From sequence record ON529853.1: 64,000 nucleotides of DNA. The stretch is one strand, 5' to 3'. The position numbers were made by a program, and so were the translations under genes. The notes beneath the pieces were generated by a model. It made no database searches and had not been told where the DNA came from. It saw only the letters and a list, made by a program, of their open reading frames with translations. Below are positions 6,209-52,967 of this stretch, one piece after another; the stretch's first letter is position 1; each line of letters opens with the position of its first letter.

Positions 6209-6885
6209 GCGGCTCCAGCGACGACGATACGGTCGAAGCGGGTCACCTCGACCAGGCTCCAGGACGGATCAAGGGCTTGCAGTTCGGCGTGCTCTTGGCG
6301 GGCGACGTCGAGGTCGACGTAGTCTGACCGATTGCCCGACGCGTGCACGACCTCCCAGTAGACCTCCTTCTCGGCGTCCTTGGGATCATGGGCGGTGCCG
6401 CCGTAGGCCAGGCGGTCGTAGACCTCCTTGATCTGGTCCATGTCCTCCAGCTTGGTCTCCATGTAGGCCATGGGGATCATGGCGAACTGGCGCTGATCGA
6501 TCGGCGTCAGGGCGCTCCACAGATAACCCAGGACCGGGAAGGCGTCGGCGACATAGTCCATGATGGCGGTGATGCGCTGCTGCCCGTCCAGGAGCAGGCC
6601 GTCGTAGGGACTGTCGAGGCCGCCCACGCGGTTGACGATGTAGGCGCCCAGAGGCAGGCGCTGCCAGATCGATTCGATGAACCGCACCTTCTGCTCGGTC
6701 GTCCAGACCGGAGGGCGCTGGAAATCGGGCAGGATGAAGTTGCCCAGCTTGCGCTCGCCGGCGCGCAGCGGGCGATCCCACATGGCGTCGGGGCGGTAGA
6801 TGCTCACCAGGGTGCCCGAGGTGTTGCTGGCGCGGAACCACGGGCTTGGCATCTTGCAGCCTTCGGGGATGGCGGTCTTGGGCAT
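6205..6885 (-). CDS. DUF262 (ParB-like/GmrSD N-terminal) domain protein
   Basis: LPDFQRPPVWT, FIESIW..LPLG and LLDGQQR motifs. True start MPKTAIP after GGAGGACCCC. Confidence 0.8.
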   Translation of the reverse strand: MPKTAIPEGCKMPSPWFRASNTSGTLVSIYRPDAMWDRPLRAGERKLGNFILPDFQRPPVWTTEQKVRFIESIWQRLPLGAYIVNRVGGLDSPYDGLLLDGQQRITAIMDYVADAFPVLGYLWSALTPIDQRQFAMIPMAYMETKLEDMDQIKEVYDRLAYGGTAHDPKDAEKEVYWEVVHASGNRSDYVDLDVARQEHAELQALDPSWSLVEVTRFDRIVVAGAA

Positions 6886-6915
6886 GGGGTCCTCCAGGTC
6901 GTCGTTGATTGGGTG

Positions 6916-13715: not shown

Positions 13716-13744
13716 CACTAGCTGCCGCGATCACTGGCTGTCAA
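13716..13744 (-). promoter_or_regulatory. sigma70-type promoter TTGACA-N17-CTAGTG with downstream CTGACA
   Basis: Read on minus strand. GCTAGTG resembles the Caulobacter RpoD -10 element. Confidence 0.6.
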
Positions 13745-22105: not shown

Positions 22106-22132
22106 TGTAAAGGAATGATCTGCGGATGTCAA
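22106..22132 (-). promoter_or_regulatory. Class A phage promoter
   Basis: Minus strand TTGACATCCGCAGATCATTCCTTTACA. Confidence 0.82.
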
Positions 22133-22497
22133 TCGGCATTCGCGATCTCGCACAGCCAGTCGCCGTGACAGCGTAGAGGGGCGCAGGCGCACATCAGGTG
22201 GCGGCCCTTGAGTTGGCGCCGCACGAGGGCGAGGAAGGATTCGTCCTGGCTCTTCTCGGCGATGAACTTGTCAATGACCGTGTCCCGATCCCCGTCCCGG
22301 CCGATCAGGTAGCCATTGCCGTAAGGCGTGCCGCGCATGATCGAGGTCGTCCCCGGCGGCCAGTTATGGCGGTCGAAATCACGCGCGTTCAGGACCTCGG
22401 GCGGGCGTGGGTGCTTCGCCTTCAGGTGGGTGCGCAGATGCGACTTGCCCAGGAACCACTCGTCGCAGTCCGGGCACTTGTAGGAGGCGCCGCCCAT
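22129..22497 (-). CDS. C2H2 zinc finger fused to a DUF4326-like domain
   Basis: YKCPDCDEWFLGKSHLRTHLKAKH, then IMRGTPYGN...L.GRHLMCACAPLRCHGDWL. Confidence 0.75.
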   Translation of the reverse strand: MGGASYKCPDCDEWFLGKSHLRTHLKAKHPRPPEVLNARDFDRHNWPPGTTSIMRGTPYGNGYLIGRDGDRDTVIDKFIAEKSQDESFLALVRRQLKGRHLMCACAPLRCHGDWLCEIANAD

Positions 22498-23446
22498 CAG
22501 CGCTCGGCTTTCGGGTGCGTGTTGGTCAAGGCCCAGCCCTGCTGGAAGGTGGTCAGCCCTTCCAGTTCGGCCTCGGTGAGCGCCTTGGCCCGGCCGCCGT
22601 TGCCCCAGCCGAACCAGGTCTGGAACGGCGCAGCCGGCAGGGCATGAGCCGCCGCCATGCGGGCGACGGCGGCGCATTGCTCTGCGTCCGCGCCCCAGGT
22701 GGCGAGGTCGATCACGCCGTCGTCACGCACGCCGAGCAGTATGACGCCTTGCAGCGCGCGCTGCTCCGGCGCCAGGGCGCCGTGCCAGCCGCGCATGTAG
22801 TTCGCCAGGATGCTGGCGTCTTCCGCGTCTTCCGCGCGCGCTCGCCATCCGGTGAAGCCCTCCAGCAGCAGCAGCAGGCCGACCGCTTTCAGGGCATGGC
22901 GCGCGATCAGCGCGTCCATCCGCTCATGGTGCTGCTCGCGCACCTCCGCCGTGAAGAGGTCGCGCGCGTCGGCCGCTTTGAGCCGGCTGTCGGGGTCGTC
23001 CTTGATCGCCATCAGGTCTTGTCCAGGTTGTAACGCTCGCGATCTCCGGGCGTCAGAATGCGTTCCAGGTCCTGGAGCGGCTTGACCAGGGACTGGGGGC
23101 CGCCCTTGACGGCGTCTTCGAACCGCACCGTCGCTTCCAGGGTGTCCTTGTCGATGTAGGCGATTCGGCCCTTGCAGTCGGGGATGTTGCGATGATGGAA
23201 CTGCACGCGGTCGCCCACGCGCAGCGAACGCCACTTGACGGCAAGGACCAGATTGGTGCCGATCCGGAGCGGTTCCGGCGGCTTCTCGCTCTTCTCGCTA
23301 AACGAGCGGGTATCGAAGAAGGGGCCAAGCACCTGCAACGTCACGCCGTTGGCGTCGAAGTGATTGTTGCTGCGCACGATCCTCATAGGCACGAGGACGA
23401 CATCGTCTTCTCGCAGGTTGTGGGCGTCTTCCTTAGACAGGGACAT
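22497..23446 (-). CDS. Two hypothetical proteins (22497..23012, 23012..23446)
   Basis: TGATG-coupled ORFs. The second has KOW/SH3-like VGDRV segments. Confidence 0.65.
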
Positions 23447-23822
23447 CGGCGCTTCTTTCAGCGATCAGGCGGTAGAGCGACTGCGGGCTGGCGCGCTGGA
23501 GGCGGCGGCGGACGGCCCGGTCGGGGTGGGTGCAGGGCGGCCAGACGACCAGGAGGTCGCGGCGCAGGGCGAGATAGTCGGCGGTGGGCAGGCCGTTGGG
23601 GCGGCTGACGTTGCACGCGACGCACGCGCCTCGGGTGTTGTCCTCAGCGTAGGTGCCGCCGTCCGACTTCTGCGTCAGGTGCTCCAGCGTGATCATGTCG
23701 GGCGGCTGATAGCCGCCCTCCATGGCGATCAAGCGCATTGGCCCGACACAGTAGTGGCACAGACCGTCCTGGGCGTCGAACATGGCGCGCCGACGCTTTT
23801 GCCGGGCGGACGTCCGGCTCAC
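23433..23822 (-). CDS. HNH endonuclease
   Basis: QDGLCHYC...TLEHL..KSDGG....N..GACVACN. Confidence 0.85.
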   Translation of the reverse strand: MSRTSARQKRRRAMFDAQDGLCHYCVGPMRLIAMEGGYQPPDMITLEHLTQKSDGGTYAEDNTRGACVACNVSRPNGLPTADYLALRRDLLVVWPPCTHPDRAVRRRLQRASPQSLYRLIAERSADVPV

Positions 23823-23825
23823 AGG

Positions 23826-24578
23826 CTAGGCTTCCTGGTTGCTCAGGGCGACGACCCGATCCAGCCCGATGGCGACCTCGAACACCGTCAGGCTGTTCTT
23901 GGGGGTCGTGCCCAGGTAGGGGTCGAATGTCGGGAAGTCGGTGCGGCGCGAGGTCGACGCGATTTCCTTGAACTCGGTGTGCGTCGGGACGGGGGACCAG
24001 AGGCCTTCGATGTCGATGGTCTCGGTGGCGTAGGTCGGCAGTCGGTCCGACGGGACCTGACGGGTCGGCTGACCGATGATCTGGGCCAGTTCGATCTCCA
24101 GAGCGTCCCGCAGCGCCGTGGCGTAGTCGGCGTGGCTGTCGGCGCGGTAGATGCACTGGAATTCCAGTTGGTAGAAGGCGTTGAACCGCAGTTTGGCGGC
24201 CGTGGCGCCGTCGGCGGCCTCGGTGCGGAACGACAGGCCGGCCTGCCATACGCATAGCGGCGGCTTGGCGCTGGTCGCCTGGAGCAGGTGCTGGGCGTAG
24301 AGATAGGAGCCCGGCGTGGTCTCGGCGCGCAGCGCCCAGGTCTCGGCGTTCATCTCGCGCCGCAACGAAAAGACGTCGTCGGCCTCGTAGGCGTCCGAGA
24401 AGCCGGCAAGCGGCATGATGACCGGCGCCTCGACCCGTTCCAGGCGCCAGGACTGGTTGAGGTCCAGAAGAGTGCGCTCGACGCACCCCTTCAGTCGACC
24501 GACCGCCTGCTCGCGCTGCTGAATTTCCTTTTCGCTCCAGAATCGCAGACCTGCGATCGGATATAGCGCGCGACTCAT
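23826..24578 (-). CDS. Stand-alone class II aminoacyl-tRNA synthetase catalytic domain (Gly/Pro/Thr-like core, no anticodon-binding domain)
   Basis: Motif 1-like VEAPVIMP, LRAETT, motif 2 GLSFRTE...RFNAFYQLEFQ, motif 3 FEVAIGLDR. The protein ends immediately after motif 3 (250 aa). Confidence 0.8.
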   Translation of the reverse strand: MSRALYPIAGLRFWSEKEIQQREQAVGRLKGCVERTLLDLNQSWRLERVEAPVIMPLAGFSDAYEADDVFSLRREMNAETWALRAETTPGSYLYAQHLLQATSAKPPLCVWQAGLSFRTEAADGATAAKLRFNAFYQLEFQCIYRADSHADYATALRDALEIELAQIIGQPTRQVPSDRLPTYATETIDIEGLWSPVPTHTEFKEIASTSRRTDFPTFDPYLGTTPKNSLTVFEVAIGLDRVVALSNQEA

Positions 24579-24608
24579 GGCGGCTCCTATGATTGACGGT
24601 GACGGTGA

Positions 24609-24637
24609 CAGTAGCCGTCAGGATAGTTGACTGTCAA
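24609..24637 (-). promoter_or_regulatory. Class B promoter TTGACA-N17-CTACTG with ATCCTGACGG in the spacer
   Basis: Minus strand TTGACAGTCAACTATCCTGACGGCTACTG. Flanked by TGACGG/TGACAG repeats. Confidence 0.7.
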
Positions 24638-24646
24638 GGCGTTCCG

Positions 24647-25192
24647 CTAGGACCAGCGGGTGATCCGCACGAGTTCTCGCGCCTGGACCGGGTCTCGCCC
24701 CGCCTTGATCCAGTCCTTCAGGATGAAGTCGCCGCGCAGCATCGGCCACTCCCGCGAGAGCGCCGCCACGGCGCCGTCGTCGAAGGCCGCCTGATCCATG
24801 GGGACATAGCTGACCGGCAGATGGAGGGAGCGGGCCAGGTCGATTTCACCGCGCACGCCCTCTGATGTCGCCGCGCCCGGCATGTCGATGACGACGATGG
24901 CGTCGCAGCGCGCCAGCAGCCGGCGGGAATAGTGCTGCCAGAACTCCCAGTTGCCGGGGATTTTGTGCTTGCCCAGGATGGCGTGGTTCATGAGCGGCGA
25001 GACTGGGAAGGTGTCGCCGGCCGTCAGCATGTCGGCGACGGTCTTGTCGAAGGCGCTCATGCGTGCGGCGACGATCAGCGGGTCGGGGTCGCTGTAGGGC
25101 GCCGCGACATAGACCAGGGAGGCGCTGGGCGACGGCCGGGCGAAGAAAGGATCGGCGATCTCTTCGGACGTGGGGTGTTGAATGTCGGTCAT
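24647..25192 (-). CDS. Nucleoside 2-deoxyribosyltransferase-like (DUF1937-type) protein
   Basis: VYVAAPYS...LLARCDAIVVI..PG...SEGVRGEI..A pattern. Confidence 0.7.
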   Translation of the reverse strand: MTDIQHPTSEEIADPFFARPSPSASLVYVAAPYSDPDPLIVAARMSAFDKTVADMLTAGDTFPVSPLMNHAILGKHKIPGNWEFWQHYSRRLLARCDAIVVIDMPGAATSEGVRGEIDLARSLHLPVSYVPMDQAAFDDGAVAALSREWPMLRGDFILKDWIKAGRDPVQARELVRITRWS

Positions 25193-25743
25193 GCGTCTTC
25201 CTCGTTTTCGGGCCACACGATCTCGTCGCGCATGACCTGGTCGAACTCGTCCCAGGCGGCGGCGGGCGTGGCGTGCAGGGTGGGCGAGCAGTCCCCGCCG
25301 GCGTGGACGCGGTAGCCGCCGTCTTCCGCCAGCACGGCCCAGGACCGCATGTTCATCGCCGGCATCGGCCGGGAGCGGTCGACCAGGCCCGAGTGCACGA
25401 CGCCGTCGGGGTTGAGGACCGGATCGTAGTAGTCCCCGGCGATGATCGCACGGATACGATCTTCAGGTTTCAGCGGCTCGCCCCGATCCAGCCGACGCAA
25501 GACCGCCGTATCGTACTGCGGTTGCGAGAGCGGCGGCAGGGGAACTTCCGAGATGGCGCCGATCCGCTCTACCCGCGCCTTACCGACCGGCCGATCCAGG
25601 AGCGTCGACGCGCAAAAGTCGTCCGCCAGCACCTCGGCGCGATAGGCGGCGGCGTCGGCGCAGTCGATCTCCACGATGTATTCGGTGGTGACGCGGACCC
25701 TGGCCTTGAAAGACCGAGGTCTGTCGAGAATGTCGTCATACAT
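25189..25743 (-). CDS. Hypothetical protein with hairpin-occluded RBS
   Basis: ORF track. See the hairpin feature at 25745..25776. Confidence 0.7.
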   Translation of the reverse strand: MYDDILDRPRSFKARVRVTTEYIVEIDCADAAAYRAEVLADDFCASTLLDRPVGKARVERIGAISEVPLPPLSQPQYDTAVLRRLDRGEPLKPEDRIRAIIAGDYYDPVLNPDGVVHSGLVDRSRPMPAMNMRSWAVLAEDGGYRVHAGGDCSPTLHATPAAAWDEFDQVMRDEIVWPENEEDA

Positions 25744-25776: not shown

Positions 25777-25803
25777 CTATCAAGTAGCATTGACGTCTGT
25801 CAA
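25774..25803 (-). promoter_or_regulatory. Promoter TTGACA-N18-TAGAGG
   Basis: Same TTGACAGAC and TAGAGG boxes as the 37356-37384 promoter. The predicted start site falls inside the hairpin. Confidence 0.55.
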
Positions 25804-25822
25804 CGCTCTAACGCTACAACCC

Positions 25823-26085: not shown

Positions 26086-27330
26086 TTAGGCCGAGACCTG
26101 CTCCTCGGAGAGGCTCAGCAACCTGTTTTGGACCTCGGCGGGCGAAAGAGGCAACTCGCTTTCGATGCTGCTCACGAAGGTGTGAGCGCAGGCTTCGGGG
26201 TAGAAGGTCTCATACATCGTCGTCACTTCCTCGACGCCGATGTGCCCCAACACGTAGCGACGGTCGATGCGGCCGGGCCGCATCAGGGCGGCGTCCAGGG
26301 TGTCGGCGTGGTTGGAGGTGATGAAGAGGATGCGGCCGTCGCGCGCACCGATGCCGTCGATGGCGTTCAGGATTCCCGACAGCGTGATTCCGCTCTTGGC
26401 CGCCTCGCCGCCGCTGTTCACCTGGATCGCCGCGTCATCACCGGCCGACTGGCTGGCGGACCGCTCCCCAGCGGCCTTGACGGCGTCGAAGTCCTCGACG
26501 ACCACGAAGTTCGATCCCGCCTGGTTGATCGCACGCTGTAGCTGGTTGTCGTTGTCCAAAGTCGCCGGGTTGATGATGAAAACGGGTTTGGAGAAATAGG
26601 AGGCCAGGGCGAAGATAAAGGTGGTCTTGCCGGTGCCGGGCGGACCCTCGAACGAAAATCCTCGGCGATAGGGAATGCCGCGCACGGCGTACCACATGCG
26701 CCGCGCCAGGAACCGCGTGATGTCGGCGATAACGGCGGCCTTGATTCCGGCGTCCAGATAGACGGTGTCCATCGACCGCTTGGGTCGGCGCTCAATCAGG
26801 CTGTAGTCGTGACCGGCCCACAGGTAGACCGGGATCGTGTTCTTGTCCTCTTCGACGGACTTGATGGATTCGAGCAGCAGGCGCAGCACGTCGTGATTGC
26901 GACCGGGCGTGGTGATGGTGATCGACTGCTTGCGGCGCTTGGCGGCGGAGTAGGCGTCGGCCTCGTCGCCCTTGTCTTCGATGTGGCGGTGCACGAACCA
27001 GAACCGCATGCCGTTGCGCAGCAGGTGGAACCCGGCGCCCGGCGACAGGTTGAAGTCTTCCTTGTCGTTCGCCCGGTCATACCAGGCCGCCACGCCGAAC
27101 CGGCGCGAATGTTTGGCGTCGGGGTGCTTGGACAGCCACAGGTCGACGAAACGGAAGACGGTGTCTTCGGAGTAGACCGTCAGCGTGGTGGTGAACTGGG
27201 CCTTGATGAAACCCAGAAGCTTCAGCGGCACCGACTTGGCCTGCATGAGGACCCAGCCGGTGATCGCCAGGGTCAATCCGCCGCCCACCAGCGGATTGCT
27301 GCTCAAAAACGTCGTGACAGACTCGAACAT
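26086..27330 (-). CDS. BCS1-like membrane-anchored AAA+ ATPase
   Basis: N-terminal TM and BCS1_N-like region, GIPYRRG..FEGPPGTGKT, Walker B VVEDFD, ITLSGILNAIDG, LDAALMRPGRID. Confidence 0.85.
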   Translation of the reverse strand: MFESVTTFLSSNPLVGGGLTLAITGWVLMQAKSVPLKLLGFIKAQFTTTLTVYSEDTVFRFVDLWLSKHPDAKHSRRFGVAAWYDRANDKEDFNLSPGAGFHLLRNGMRFWFVHRHIEDKGDEADAYSAAKRRKQSITITTPGRNHDVLRLLLESIKSVEEDKNTIPVYLWAGHDYSLIERRPKRSMDTVYLDAGIKAAVIADITRFLARRMWYAVRGIPYRRGFSFEGPPGTGKTTFIFALASYFSKPVFIINPATLDNDNQLQRAINQAGSNFVVVEDFDAVKAAGERSASQSAGDDAAIQVNSGGEAAKSGITLSGILNAIDGIGARDGRILFITSNHADTLDAALMRPGRIDRRYVLGHIGVEEVTTMYETFYPEACAHTFVSSIESELPLSPAEVQNRLLSLSEEQVSA

Positions 27331-27376
27331 GGGCACTCGGGAAAGATGGAGGATCGACCGCGAGTGTTAATGTGGC

Positions 27377-31268: not shown

Positions 31269-31297
31269 TCGTAGCGGAAGCGAGTGCTGTTTGTCAA
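31269..31297 (-). promoter_or_regulatory. Promoter TTGACA-N17-CTACGA, preceded by CGAGTG
   Basis: CGAGTGTTGACA context is shared with the promoters at 37379-37390 and 38163-38174. Confidence 0.65.
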
Positions 31298-33505: not shown

Positions 33506-33534
33506 TTGACACTGGACGTGGTTAACGCTATAAG
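33506..33534 (+). promoter_or_regulatory. Near-consensus sigma70 promoter TTGACA-N17-TATAAG with a GGTTAAC (CtrA half-site-like) in the spacer
   Basis: Directly upstream of the cadherin-repeat gene and back-to-back with a class A promoter. Confidence 0.75.
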
Positions 33535-38168: not shown

Positions 38169-38197
38169 TTGACAGACAGCAAACACCCCTGCTACCA
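38169..38197 (+). promoter_or_regulatory. Promoter of the Ter operon, TTGACA-N17-CTACCA
   Basis: CGAGTGTTGACAGACAGC context. GACGAC and GGAGGACCCC downstream. Confidence 0.72.
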
Positions 38198-52938: not shown

Positions 52939-52967
52939 GACCTAGCGTTGACCGCGCGCGGCGTCAA
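52939..52967 (-). promoter_or_regulatory. Promoter TTGACG-N17-TAGGTC
   Basis: GCTAGGTC -10 region. Back-to-back with a rightward TTGACA at 52985. Confidence 0.55.

Follow-up and report, generated by a model that had tools for sequence, protein, structure and literature searches.

In alpha2-type glycyl-tRNA synthetases (GlyRS) the amino group of glycine is bound by three absolutely conserved Glu residues (E245, E296 and E522 in the human enzyme), held in a clamp by R410, likewise absolutely conserved, while Y386 contacts the carbonyl; at position 524 the true alpha2 enzymes carry Ser or Ala, by which alanine is excluded (PMC4938167). GlyQ is a small, catalytic-only glycine-activating subunit that does not read transfer RNA (tRNA) by itself and recognises glycine by five residues including a Trp, not by three Glu (PMC4938167). 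A synthetase without anticodon domain is represented by CysRS*, described in a paper that also mentions LysU (PMC9437257). Here we describe BAMBUS_02870, a gene of Brevundimonas phage vB_BpoS-Bambus, which is predicted to encode the catalytic core of an alpha2-type GlyRS as a stand-alone protein. It was analysed within a window of 64,000 nucleotides of sequence record ON529853.1 (window position = record position minus 124,000).

BAMBUS_02870 corresponds to an open reading frame (ORF) on the minus strand (23826-24578) with an ATG start and a product of 250 amino acids (aa), which is identical to UTC29369.1 and carries the name 'aminoacyl-tRNA synthetase' in the record. According to the same record the phage has a genome of 348,100 bp, belongs to the Dolichocephalovirinae and has B. 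pondensis LVF1 as host. Its isolation paper gives 24 tRNAs and lists 473 of the 550 genes as hypothetical; the word 'synthetase' has 0 occurrences there and the gene is undiscussed. Judged from at least 644 homologues (E ≤ 1e-3), with identities of 90-34% and, in nearly every case, lengths of 230-260 aa, the reading frame is genuine. Contigs bearing homologues in this search reach 570 kb. PHROGs and PADLOC searches with the protein returned zero matches. In virome cDNA libraries only low-depth contigs cover the gene, and these are neutral on expression due to possible DNA carry-over. We refer to the family as mini-GlyRS; databases give it generic names only and a paper on it was not found in the literature. 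The features of the coding region are as follows.

23826..24578, minus strand: coding sequence of a stand-alone GlyRS-type class IIa catalytic core, BAMBUS_02870 (ORF, record annotation, homologues, AlphaFold model, structural match)
24411..24449, minus strand: motif 1 strand, residues 44-56 (W44...P52...P56), after the long helix 16-40 (conserved columns, secondary structure of the model)
24315..24332, minus strand: L83-R84-A-E86-T87-T88 block, counterpart of GlyRS 'RPETAQ' (hidden Markov model (HMM) alignments to GlyRS chains, invariance)
24156..24233, minus strand: motif 2, residues 116-141, with S116, R118, E120, flexible loop 121-130, R131, F135, Q137, E139 and Q141 (alignments)
23937..24050, minus strand: residues 177-214, with S-D-R179-L-P181-x-Y183, T187, D189, E205, S208, S210, R212 and D214 (alignment to M. 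tuberculosis and N. equitans GlyRS, invariance)
23844..23885, minus strand: motif 3 region, residues 232-245, with E234, A236, G238, D240 and R241 (alignments)

All three class II motifs can be traced. Motif 1 consists of helix 16-40 and the P52/P56 strand, motif 2 reads S116-F-R118-x-E120...R131...F135-x-Q137-x-E139 and motif 3 reads G238-L-D240-R241. The final helix spans residues 239-247, and the C-terminus at residue 250 lies 9 residues past the motif-3 Arg. In the HMM alignments residues 188, 220 and 239 of T. thermophilus GlyRS stand opposite E86, R118 and E139, respectively. E86 is the first Glu of the glycine pocket, matching T. thermophilus E188 and human E245, E139 is the second and E234 the third, the latter being part of F-E234-V-A236-x-G-L-D-R, which stands opposite 'LELSFGVDR' in the N. 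equitans alignment. Moreover R212 is the counterpart of human GlyRS R410, Y183 is the Tyr of the amino-acid loop and A236 occupies the Ser/Ala position that excludes alanine.

Conservation was evaluated on 64 phage and 77 bacterial sequences. E86/E139/E234, R212, Y183, R118/E120/R131/F135 and G238/R241 are conserved to 98-100%, and A236 is invariant in the family, like E86, E139, E234 and R212. The consensus blocks of this single-domain family, in which almost all members have 215-260 aa (LR(A/P)ETT, SFRxE, FxQxEFQ, SDRLPxY, ExxSxSxRxD and E(V/I)AxGxDR) are all found in the Bambus protein. The Phosso-like/bacterial subfamily has a shorter motif-2 loop. Because all glycine-pocket residues of alpha2 GlyRS are invariant, the amino acid of BAMBUS_02870 is almost certainly glycine. 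With pocket and ATP residues conserved to this degree, glycine-specific adenylate formation appears well supported as a prediction from sequence.

The fold was predicted by AlphaFold2 using an alignment of 45 family sequences (A1), resulting in a predicted local distance difference test (pLDDT) score of 92 and a predicted template modelling score (pTM) of 0.90. The sole uncertain part is the motif-2 loop at residues 124-127 (pLDDT <50). The best structural match is N. equitans GlyRS with a VIA-align Z of 22.2 and a root mean square deviation (rmsd) of 2.8 Å over 236 aligned aa. It is followed by human GlyRS (Z 20.4), SerRS and the glycine-activating amino acid:[carrier protein] ligase Bll0957 (Z 19.4 each), ThrRS, ProRS, HisRS and HisZ (Z 19.2-16.5, HisZ at 16.5-17.8), AsnA (Z 15.1) and EpmA/GenX (Z 14.1). 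HisZ and the Pol-gamma accessory subunit (POLG2) were matched in structure with Z 17-18. In Foldseek the GlyRS of M. tuberculosis and of T. thermophilus rank highest. Amino acid:carrier-protein ligases are expected to have atypical (methanogen-type) SerRS as closest kin; here GlyRS is ahead in structure (Z 22.2 vs 19.4) as well as in the family profile, which reaches GlyRS chains with 5e-15 and SerRS with 1e-6. By these profiles and the AlphaFold model, the closest kin of BAMBUS_02870 is thus predicted to be alpha2-type GlyRS. The curated models respond weakly: GlyRS is the best NCBIfam match (1.4e-9), far under the cut-off, with NF003211 and TIGR00389 at 37.4 bits vs a cut-off of 312 and 21.4 vs 243. 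In Pfam, PF00587 (tRNA-synt_2b) gave 16.9 bits vs 29.3, tRNA-synt_His was likewise below threshold and nothing else was matched.

The protein has lost every element known to hold tRNA in GlyRS. The 249 model residues cover chain positions 11-386 of N. equitans GlyRS with the GlyRS insertions deleted. Nothing is located C-terminal of motif 3, so the HGTP anticodon-binding domain is absent from the protein. A search for HGTP_anticodon (PF03129) throughout the 348-kb phage genome was blank, while 14 of 14 control genomes scored. The only other class IIa core of the phage genome is a full-length SerRS.

Upstream of the gene, a 68-bp gap downstream of the preceding gene's stop holds two signals, both derived from the sequence.

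24608..24637, minus strand: promoter-like site, TTGACA at 24637-24632 and GCTACTGT at 24615-24608
24584..24588, minus strand: Shine-Dalgarno AGGAG, 5 nt 5' of the ATG (24578)

With 7 copies in the window vs 0.49 expected, the pattern TTGAC-N15-18-GCTA is in 14-fold excess. The other copies are located at 13719-13744(-), 25790-25816(+), 31272-31297(-), 33506-33530(+), 38169-38194(+) and 52943-52967(-). A promoter scan with the E. coli consensus was blank at the site upstream of BAMBUS_02870. The site presumably resembles a Caulobacter-type housekeeping promoter, and it is credible from the sequence that BAMBUS_02870 stands under its own host-type promoter.

Most of what an initial annotation of this stretch had claimed is in agreement with these results. 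A length of 250 aa with motifs 1-3 intact and an end right after motif 3 is confirmed by the ORF, the 45-sequence alignment and the model. The annotation took the protein for a truncated class II paralogue with an adenylate-forming site, and indeed the site residues are invariant and the fold matches GlyRS. That it is no ordinary GlyRS is reflected in the GlyRS equivalog model, where it scores 37 bits and the cut-off is 312. The proposed lack of a tRNA-recognition domain holds insofar as the anticodon-binding domain is absent from the protein and the rest of the phage genome. A separate anticodon-binding subunit, which had been suggested as a target for a genome-wide search, did not emerge, with no HGTP_anticodon domain found and 14 of 14 controls positive. 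Finally, a promoter of its own is plausible in view of the TTGACA/GCTACTGT site and the excess of 7 vs 0.49 for the pattern.

In a profile search over 1.84 billion representatives, 109 clusters at 50% identity matched the family with E ≤ 1e-30. None of the full-length members, which have 210-260 aa, is fused to another domain. A few members reach 285-352 aa through an insert that separates the 'DDVF' block from 'LRPETT', at the position of GlyRS insertion 1. When the search was seeded with one long member, 1,869 clusters (90% identity) with continuous lengths of ~245-354 aa were obtained. The insert at this site is helical and varies between 20 and 100 aa (P0198, P0202, P0218, P0227, P0243 and many others); Bambus lacks it. 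In P0198 it is modelled as a four-helix module (pLDDT 67-87). The fold of this member raises the alignment to GlyRS from 236 to only 260 residues (rmsd 6.8), with no clear match to a known tRNA-binding element. Most of the family is viral, and in the ESM Atlas the nearest clusters are 86-97% viral. Complete phage genomes with the gene comprise five Bambus-like Brevundimonas phages, the Caulobacter Bertelyvirus group, Sinorhizobium phage Phosso and Xanthomonas phage XbC2. The gene is also present in two huge-phage assemblies of ~635 kb.

The phage context was examined in 79 IMG/VR loci, which fall into 25 lineages when clustered at 60% identity. A tRNA gene lies within 10 kb in 38 loci. Collapsed by lineage, this applies to 14 of 25 lineages, 13 of which have a tRNA gene within 2 kb. 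The tRNA density near the gene is 1.9 per 10 kb vs ~0.7 across the Bambus genome. In the phage loci L026 and L032 a tRNA-Gly(CCC) is located 19 bp upstream of the gene, and the Phosso-like clade has CysRS, an RNA ligase, a peptidyl-tRNA hydrolase and an amber-suppressor tRNA as neighbours. Outside the window, Bambus encodes tRNA-Gly(UCC) and tRNA-Gly(GCC) with a common acceptor stem GCGACU, U73 and encoded CCA. Both display G1:C72, C2:G71, G3:C70 and U73, the canonical bacterial acceptor set. A full SerRS and PTH2 are encoded as well.

Some further tRNA observations were made. The Bambus tRNA set amounts to 24-27, as Rfam and ARAGORN disagree and ARAGORN calls a tRNA-Ala unseen by Rfam. Three tRNA-like elements of the record (ON529853.1 284467-284544, 284586-284664 and 291224-291311, i.e. 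L002:68-145, 187-265 and 6825-6912) score 32-39 bits with Rfam and are uncalled by ARAGORN. The amber-suppressor tRNA(CUA) is found at L006:5585-5660 and in L042, L043, L050, L052-L054, L056 and L058, 60-1900 bp upstream. It also occurs near the gene in L027 and L084, two further lineages, which amounts to three gains on the tree. As a general dedicated substrate this tRNA was rejected: its acceptor stems vary, the discriminator is mostly G73 (G or A, not U73), so that nothing points to a glycine identity, and Bambus has none.

No partner gene was detected in the phages. All-against-all clustering of ORFs within ±10 kb in 80 phage loci revealed no shared neighbour, the top one being present in 14 loci of a single lineage. 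A Pfam scan of the ten window neighbours of BAMBUS_02870 found no carrier-protein (PP-binding) gene, and a FemAB-type user of Gly-tRNA is absent from the phage genome.

Bacterial members were collected by scanning one genome per prokaryote species. The 107 loci are nearly all situated on alphaproteobacterial chromosomes, the carriers being many Rhizobium species, Phenylobacterium, Devosia, Shinella, Mesorhizobium, Labrys and Caulobacter. NCBI names these proteins 'aminoacyl--tRNA ligase-related protein', with 381 members in one 90% cluster. A quick maximum-likelihood tree unites them in a single clade nested among phage sequences, with a support of 98 in the Shimodaira-Hasegawa-like approximate likelihood ratio test (SH-aLRT). 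Because of this nesting in phage diversity, the short branches of the clade and a branching order at odds with taxonomy, the tree suggests that the bacterial genes were captured from phages and then spread. Their neighbours are unrelated housekeeping genes, namely an S11 DD-carboxypeptidase (PBP5-type), an Mla transporter, MltB with DUF459, gltBD and MobB, moreover acyl-CoA dehydrogenase/thiolase, a monofunctional transglycosylase, an aldolase and TetR. No operon partner emerged in 80 bacterial loci, where synteny is lineage-specific only. In one Rhizobium locus a gene for a 2,327-aa protein of apolipoprotein A1/A4/E-like repeats (L118:12433-19416, minus strand) is convergent with the mini-GlyRS homologue.

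The bacterial clade exhibits a conserved leader that is absent from the phage. About 70 of 79 bacterial loci contain an upstream ORF (uORF) of 28-43 codons ending in ...G-R-G-(L/M/F)-x-V-x-x-stop, with the stop ~97 nt upstream of the gene. In loci L088-L166 the leader occupies ~260 nt upstream of the gene at ~9995 (e.g. L120:9735-9995). Two conserved Gly codons flank the rare CGA. The Gly codon preceding the Arg varies synonymously (GGC, GGA, GGG, GGT), and the nucleotides of CGA-GGT are invariant. A covarying 11-bp helix is formed between the final codons of the uORF and a stretch further downstream that immediately precedes the invariant GACGTAAAGC. Across 13 genera or lineages the pairing is realised in 93.8% of cells vs 81.5% after shuffling, with 0 of 500 shuffles as high; slid controls reach 37-50%, and compensatory changes are seen at six pairs. 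An Rfam search with the leader revealed no family. The leader is a candidate for a new translational attenuator, and in our reading of the sequence it would mediate translational attenuation answering ribosome stalling. Sensing of Gly-tRNA by the leader is no more than a hypothesis.

Taken together we propose that BAMBUS_02870 may be a stand-alone glycine-specific class IIa enzyme derived from an alpha2 (archaeal/eukaryal/actinobacterial) GlyRS cut down to the catalytic core. In the first step, ATP would be held by the motif 2/3 residues and glycine by the E86/E139/E234 pocket with the R212 clamp, A236 barring larger side chains, such that glycyl-AMP would be formed. In the second step, glycine would be passed to the 3' end of tRNA-Gly, i.e. 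the UCC and GCC isoacceptors of the phage and those of the host. Presumably the acceptor end alone would be read (G1:C72, C2:G71, G3:C70, U73), and charging would hence be anticodon-blind. The enzyme would act as an auxiliary GlyRS, expressed from a host-type promoter and sustaining the Gly-tRNA supply during infection. It would work beside the 24-26 phage tRNAs, SerRS and the PTH2 hydrolase, the host's own GlyRS being of the unrelated alpha2beta2 type.

A precedent for such compactness is Methanomethylophilus alvus PylRS, which functions with 275 aa and without an anticodon reader; its structure (6jp2) is among the Foldseek matches. Charging of tRNA is favoured because of the GlyRS ancestry with an untouched site, the recurrent location in tRNA islands, the lack of an alternative acceptor gene beside the gene (carrier protein or other partner), the stalling-type leader in bacteria, a control expected of a gene answering ribosome stalling, and the precedent of compact anticodon-blind synthetases (PMC9437257). 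From the sequence we infer tRNA-Gly to be the single most likely acceptor candidate and assign a probability of roughly 0.4 to the core alone charging it in an anticodon-blind manner.

Several points weigh against tRNA charging. The anticodon-binding domain is absent, as are insertions 1 and 3, by which canonical alpha2 GlyRS grips the acceptor stem, and a GlyRS truncated of its C-terminal domain activates glycine but is not known to charge tRNA. The family is acidic with a median isoelectric point (pI) of 5.5 (Bambus 5.0), and the motif-2 loop, the usual reader of the acceptor end, is unconserved between subfamilies. In the 25 lineages tRNA-Gly shows no excess over tRNA-Arg, Thr, Ser or Lys in the vicinity of the gene, and the 64-kb Bambus window contains no tRNA genes at all. 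Charging is itself inferred, from sequence. Moreover free-living alphaproteobacteria equipped with GlyQS retain the gene, for which reason a non-canonical role is quite possible.

Such a role could be that of a glycine ligase with another acceptor, either a protein side chain as for EpmA/PoxA, a phosphopantetheine thiol as for the amino acid:carrier-protein ligases, a small amine as for AsnA or a nucleic-acid base. No tRNA-reading add-on has been retained, the family is acidic, the glycine-activating Bll0957 appears in the second tier of structural matches (Z 19.4), and the bacterial clade keeps the gene alongside GlyQS, stand-alone in variable housekeeping contexts, several of which concern the cell wall (PBP5-type S11 peptidase, MltB+DUF459, monofunctional transglycosylase). 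We nevertheless regard this alternative as possible but less probable than tRNA charging: neither 80 phage nor 80 bacterial loci contain a conserved candidate acceptor gene, whereas known amino acid:carrier-protein ligases adjoin their carrier protein; the protein is nearer to GlyRS than to the SerRS-type ligases or the LysRS-type EpmA (Z 14.1); the phage neighbourhoods are tRNA/translation islands; and the phage encodes no FemAB-type user of Gly-tRNA. The initial annotation had preferred an acceptor other than tRNA over a GlyRS function, and we do not follow it in this respect, given the recurring tRNA/translation islands, the two standard tRNA-Gly genes of the phage and the lack of a conserved partner or target gene.

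The core-only architecture is typical of split synthetases, and BAMBUS_02870 might be the catalytic subunit of a split GlyRS that needs a separate tRNA-binding partner from phage or host, like GlyQ/GlyS or PylSc/PylSn. A novel RNA-binding partner could hide among the 473 of 550 hypothetical Bambus genes. This appears unlikely, however, as HGTP_anticodon is found nowhere in the phage genome with all controls scoring, sequence clustering within ±10 kb gave no neighbour conserved across lineages, and each bacterial member stands as a single gene, in contexts unrelated to one another. Equally improbable is a synthase of diadenosine tetraphosphate (Ap4A) or another nucleotide signal, which would condense ATP with a second nucleotide and alter host stress signalling or RNA capping. 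Human alpha2 GlyRS makes Ap4A directly from ATP and LysU, a stress-induced LysRS paralogue, is a major Ap4A source; both speak for such a synthase, as do the intact ATP site, the stand-alone gene and the stress-type leader control of the bacterial copies. Yet the glycine pocket, needless for a glycine-independent condensation, is strictly conserved in every member, and no Nudix/ApaH-type partner is linked. Class II cores have also been recruited as regulators, and the matches to HisZ and the Pol-gamma accessory subunit (Z 17-18) would be in line with a non-catalytic paralogue that binds glycine/ATP or a partner without ligation. Since all catalytic residues of motifs 2 and 3 are invariant here, unlike in HisZ or POLG2, we consider this very improbable. 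Should tRNA-Gly charging by the core apply, the family of ~240 residues might even be the smallest natural aminoacyl-tRNA synthetase, a portable phage GlyRS reading the acceptor end only and, in some Alphaproteobacteria, a back-up induced by stalling on the Gly-Arg-Gly leader; this extended picture is tentative.

An HNH endonuclease gene (23433-23822, minus strand) is located 3 bp downstream of the mini-GlyRS gene in Bambus-like phages and missing there in Caulobacter phage CcrBL9; because of this absence at the same place it may be a free-standing homing endonuclease. The upstream neighbour (24647-25216, minus strand) encodes a DUF1937/DUF7768/DUF4406-type protein. Further genes on the minus strand encode a BCS1-like AAA+ ATPase (BCS1_N + AAA; 26086-27336), annotated as 'mitochondrial chaperone' in one relative, and a combination of C2H2 zinc finger and DUF4326 in one gene (22129-22497). 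In two unrelated jumbo phages NAD-salvage genes are found 1-5 kb upstream of the homologue, namely NadM/NAMPT in CcrBL9 (L005:2192-4710) and NadR/PnuC in XbC2 (L007:599-2444).

New in this analysis are, from sequence comparison, the apparently phage-nested bacterial clade with its putative leader peptide and associated RNA helix, and the insert of variable length at the position of GlyRS insertion 1, furthermore the lineage-corrected tRNA-island statistic without tRNA-Gly preference and the genome-wide lack of an anticodon-binding domain. Should tRNA be charged by the core on its own, nature would have evolved a counterpart to the engineered 'urzymes', and the enzyme would be the most compact synthetase known, with a bearing on the operational (acceptor-stem) code, the upkeep of translation by giant phages and the design of small orthogonal synthetases. 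If it serves another acceptor, it would found a new GlyRS-derived branch of amino-acid ligases with thousands of members in huge phages and agriculturally important rhizobia. Either way the mini-GlyRS family is large, conserved and unstudied, and the bacterial leader offers a handle on the signal answered by the bacterial copies.

Among known systems the alpha2 GlyRS of N. equitans, T. thermophilus, M. tuberculosis and human are the most similar. They share the catalytic fold, an 'IYGG..W'-like N-terminal start, the RPETxx block and motifs 1-3, together with the three-Glu glycine pocket, the Arg clamp and the amino-acid loop's Tyr. Unlike them, the phage protein is only ~20% identical, about half the size and devoid of the anticodon-binding domain and of insertions 1-3. 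The amino acid:[carrier protein] ligases Bll0957 and Atu2573 also consist of a minimal class II core (~300 aa) without tRNA-binding domain and occur in Rhizobiales, and Bll0957 activates glycine. Ligases of this type are reported to descend from methanogen-type SerRS, to possess a zinc site and to be encoded next to a carrier-protein gene; the phage protein differs by its GlyRS three-Glu pocket and by having no carrier gene nearby. With GlyQ it shares the small catalytic-only polypeptide, but belongs to another subclass with another chemistry of glycine recognition, and GlyQ is always accompanied by GlyS whereas the mini-GlyRS family has no partner gene. M. alvus PylRS, which lacks the N-terminal domain, and CysRS* are similarly compact and ignore the anticodon while still charging tRNA. 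They belong to other synthetase families with dedicated co-encoded tRNAs, in contrast to the mini-GlyRS genes with no consistently linked tRNA. EpmA/PoxA, AsnA and HisZ are truncated class II cores as well and act outside tRNA charging. EpmA, AsnA and HisZ, however, are more distant, being derived from LysRS, AspRS and HisRS, respectively, and none of them has the GlyRS pocket that is found throughout the mini-GlyRS family.

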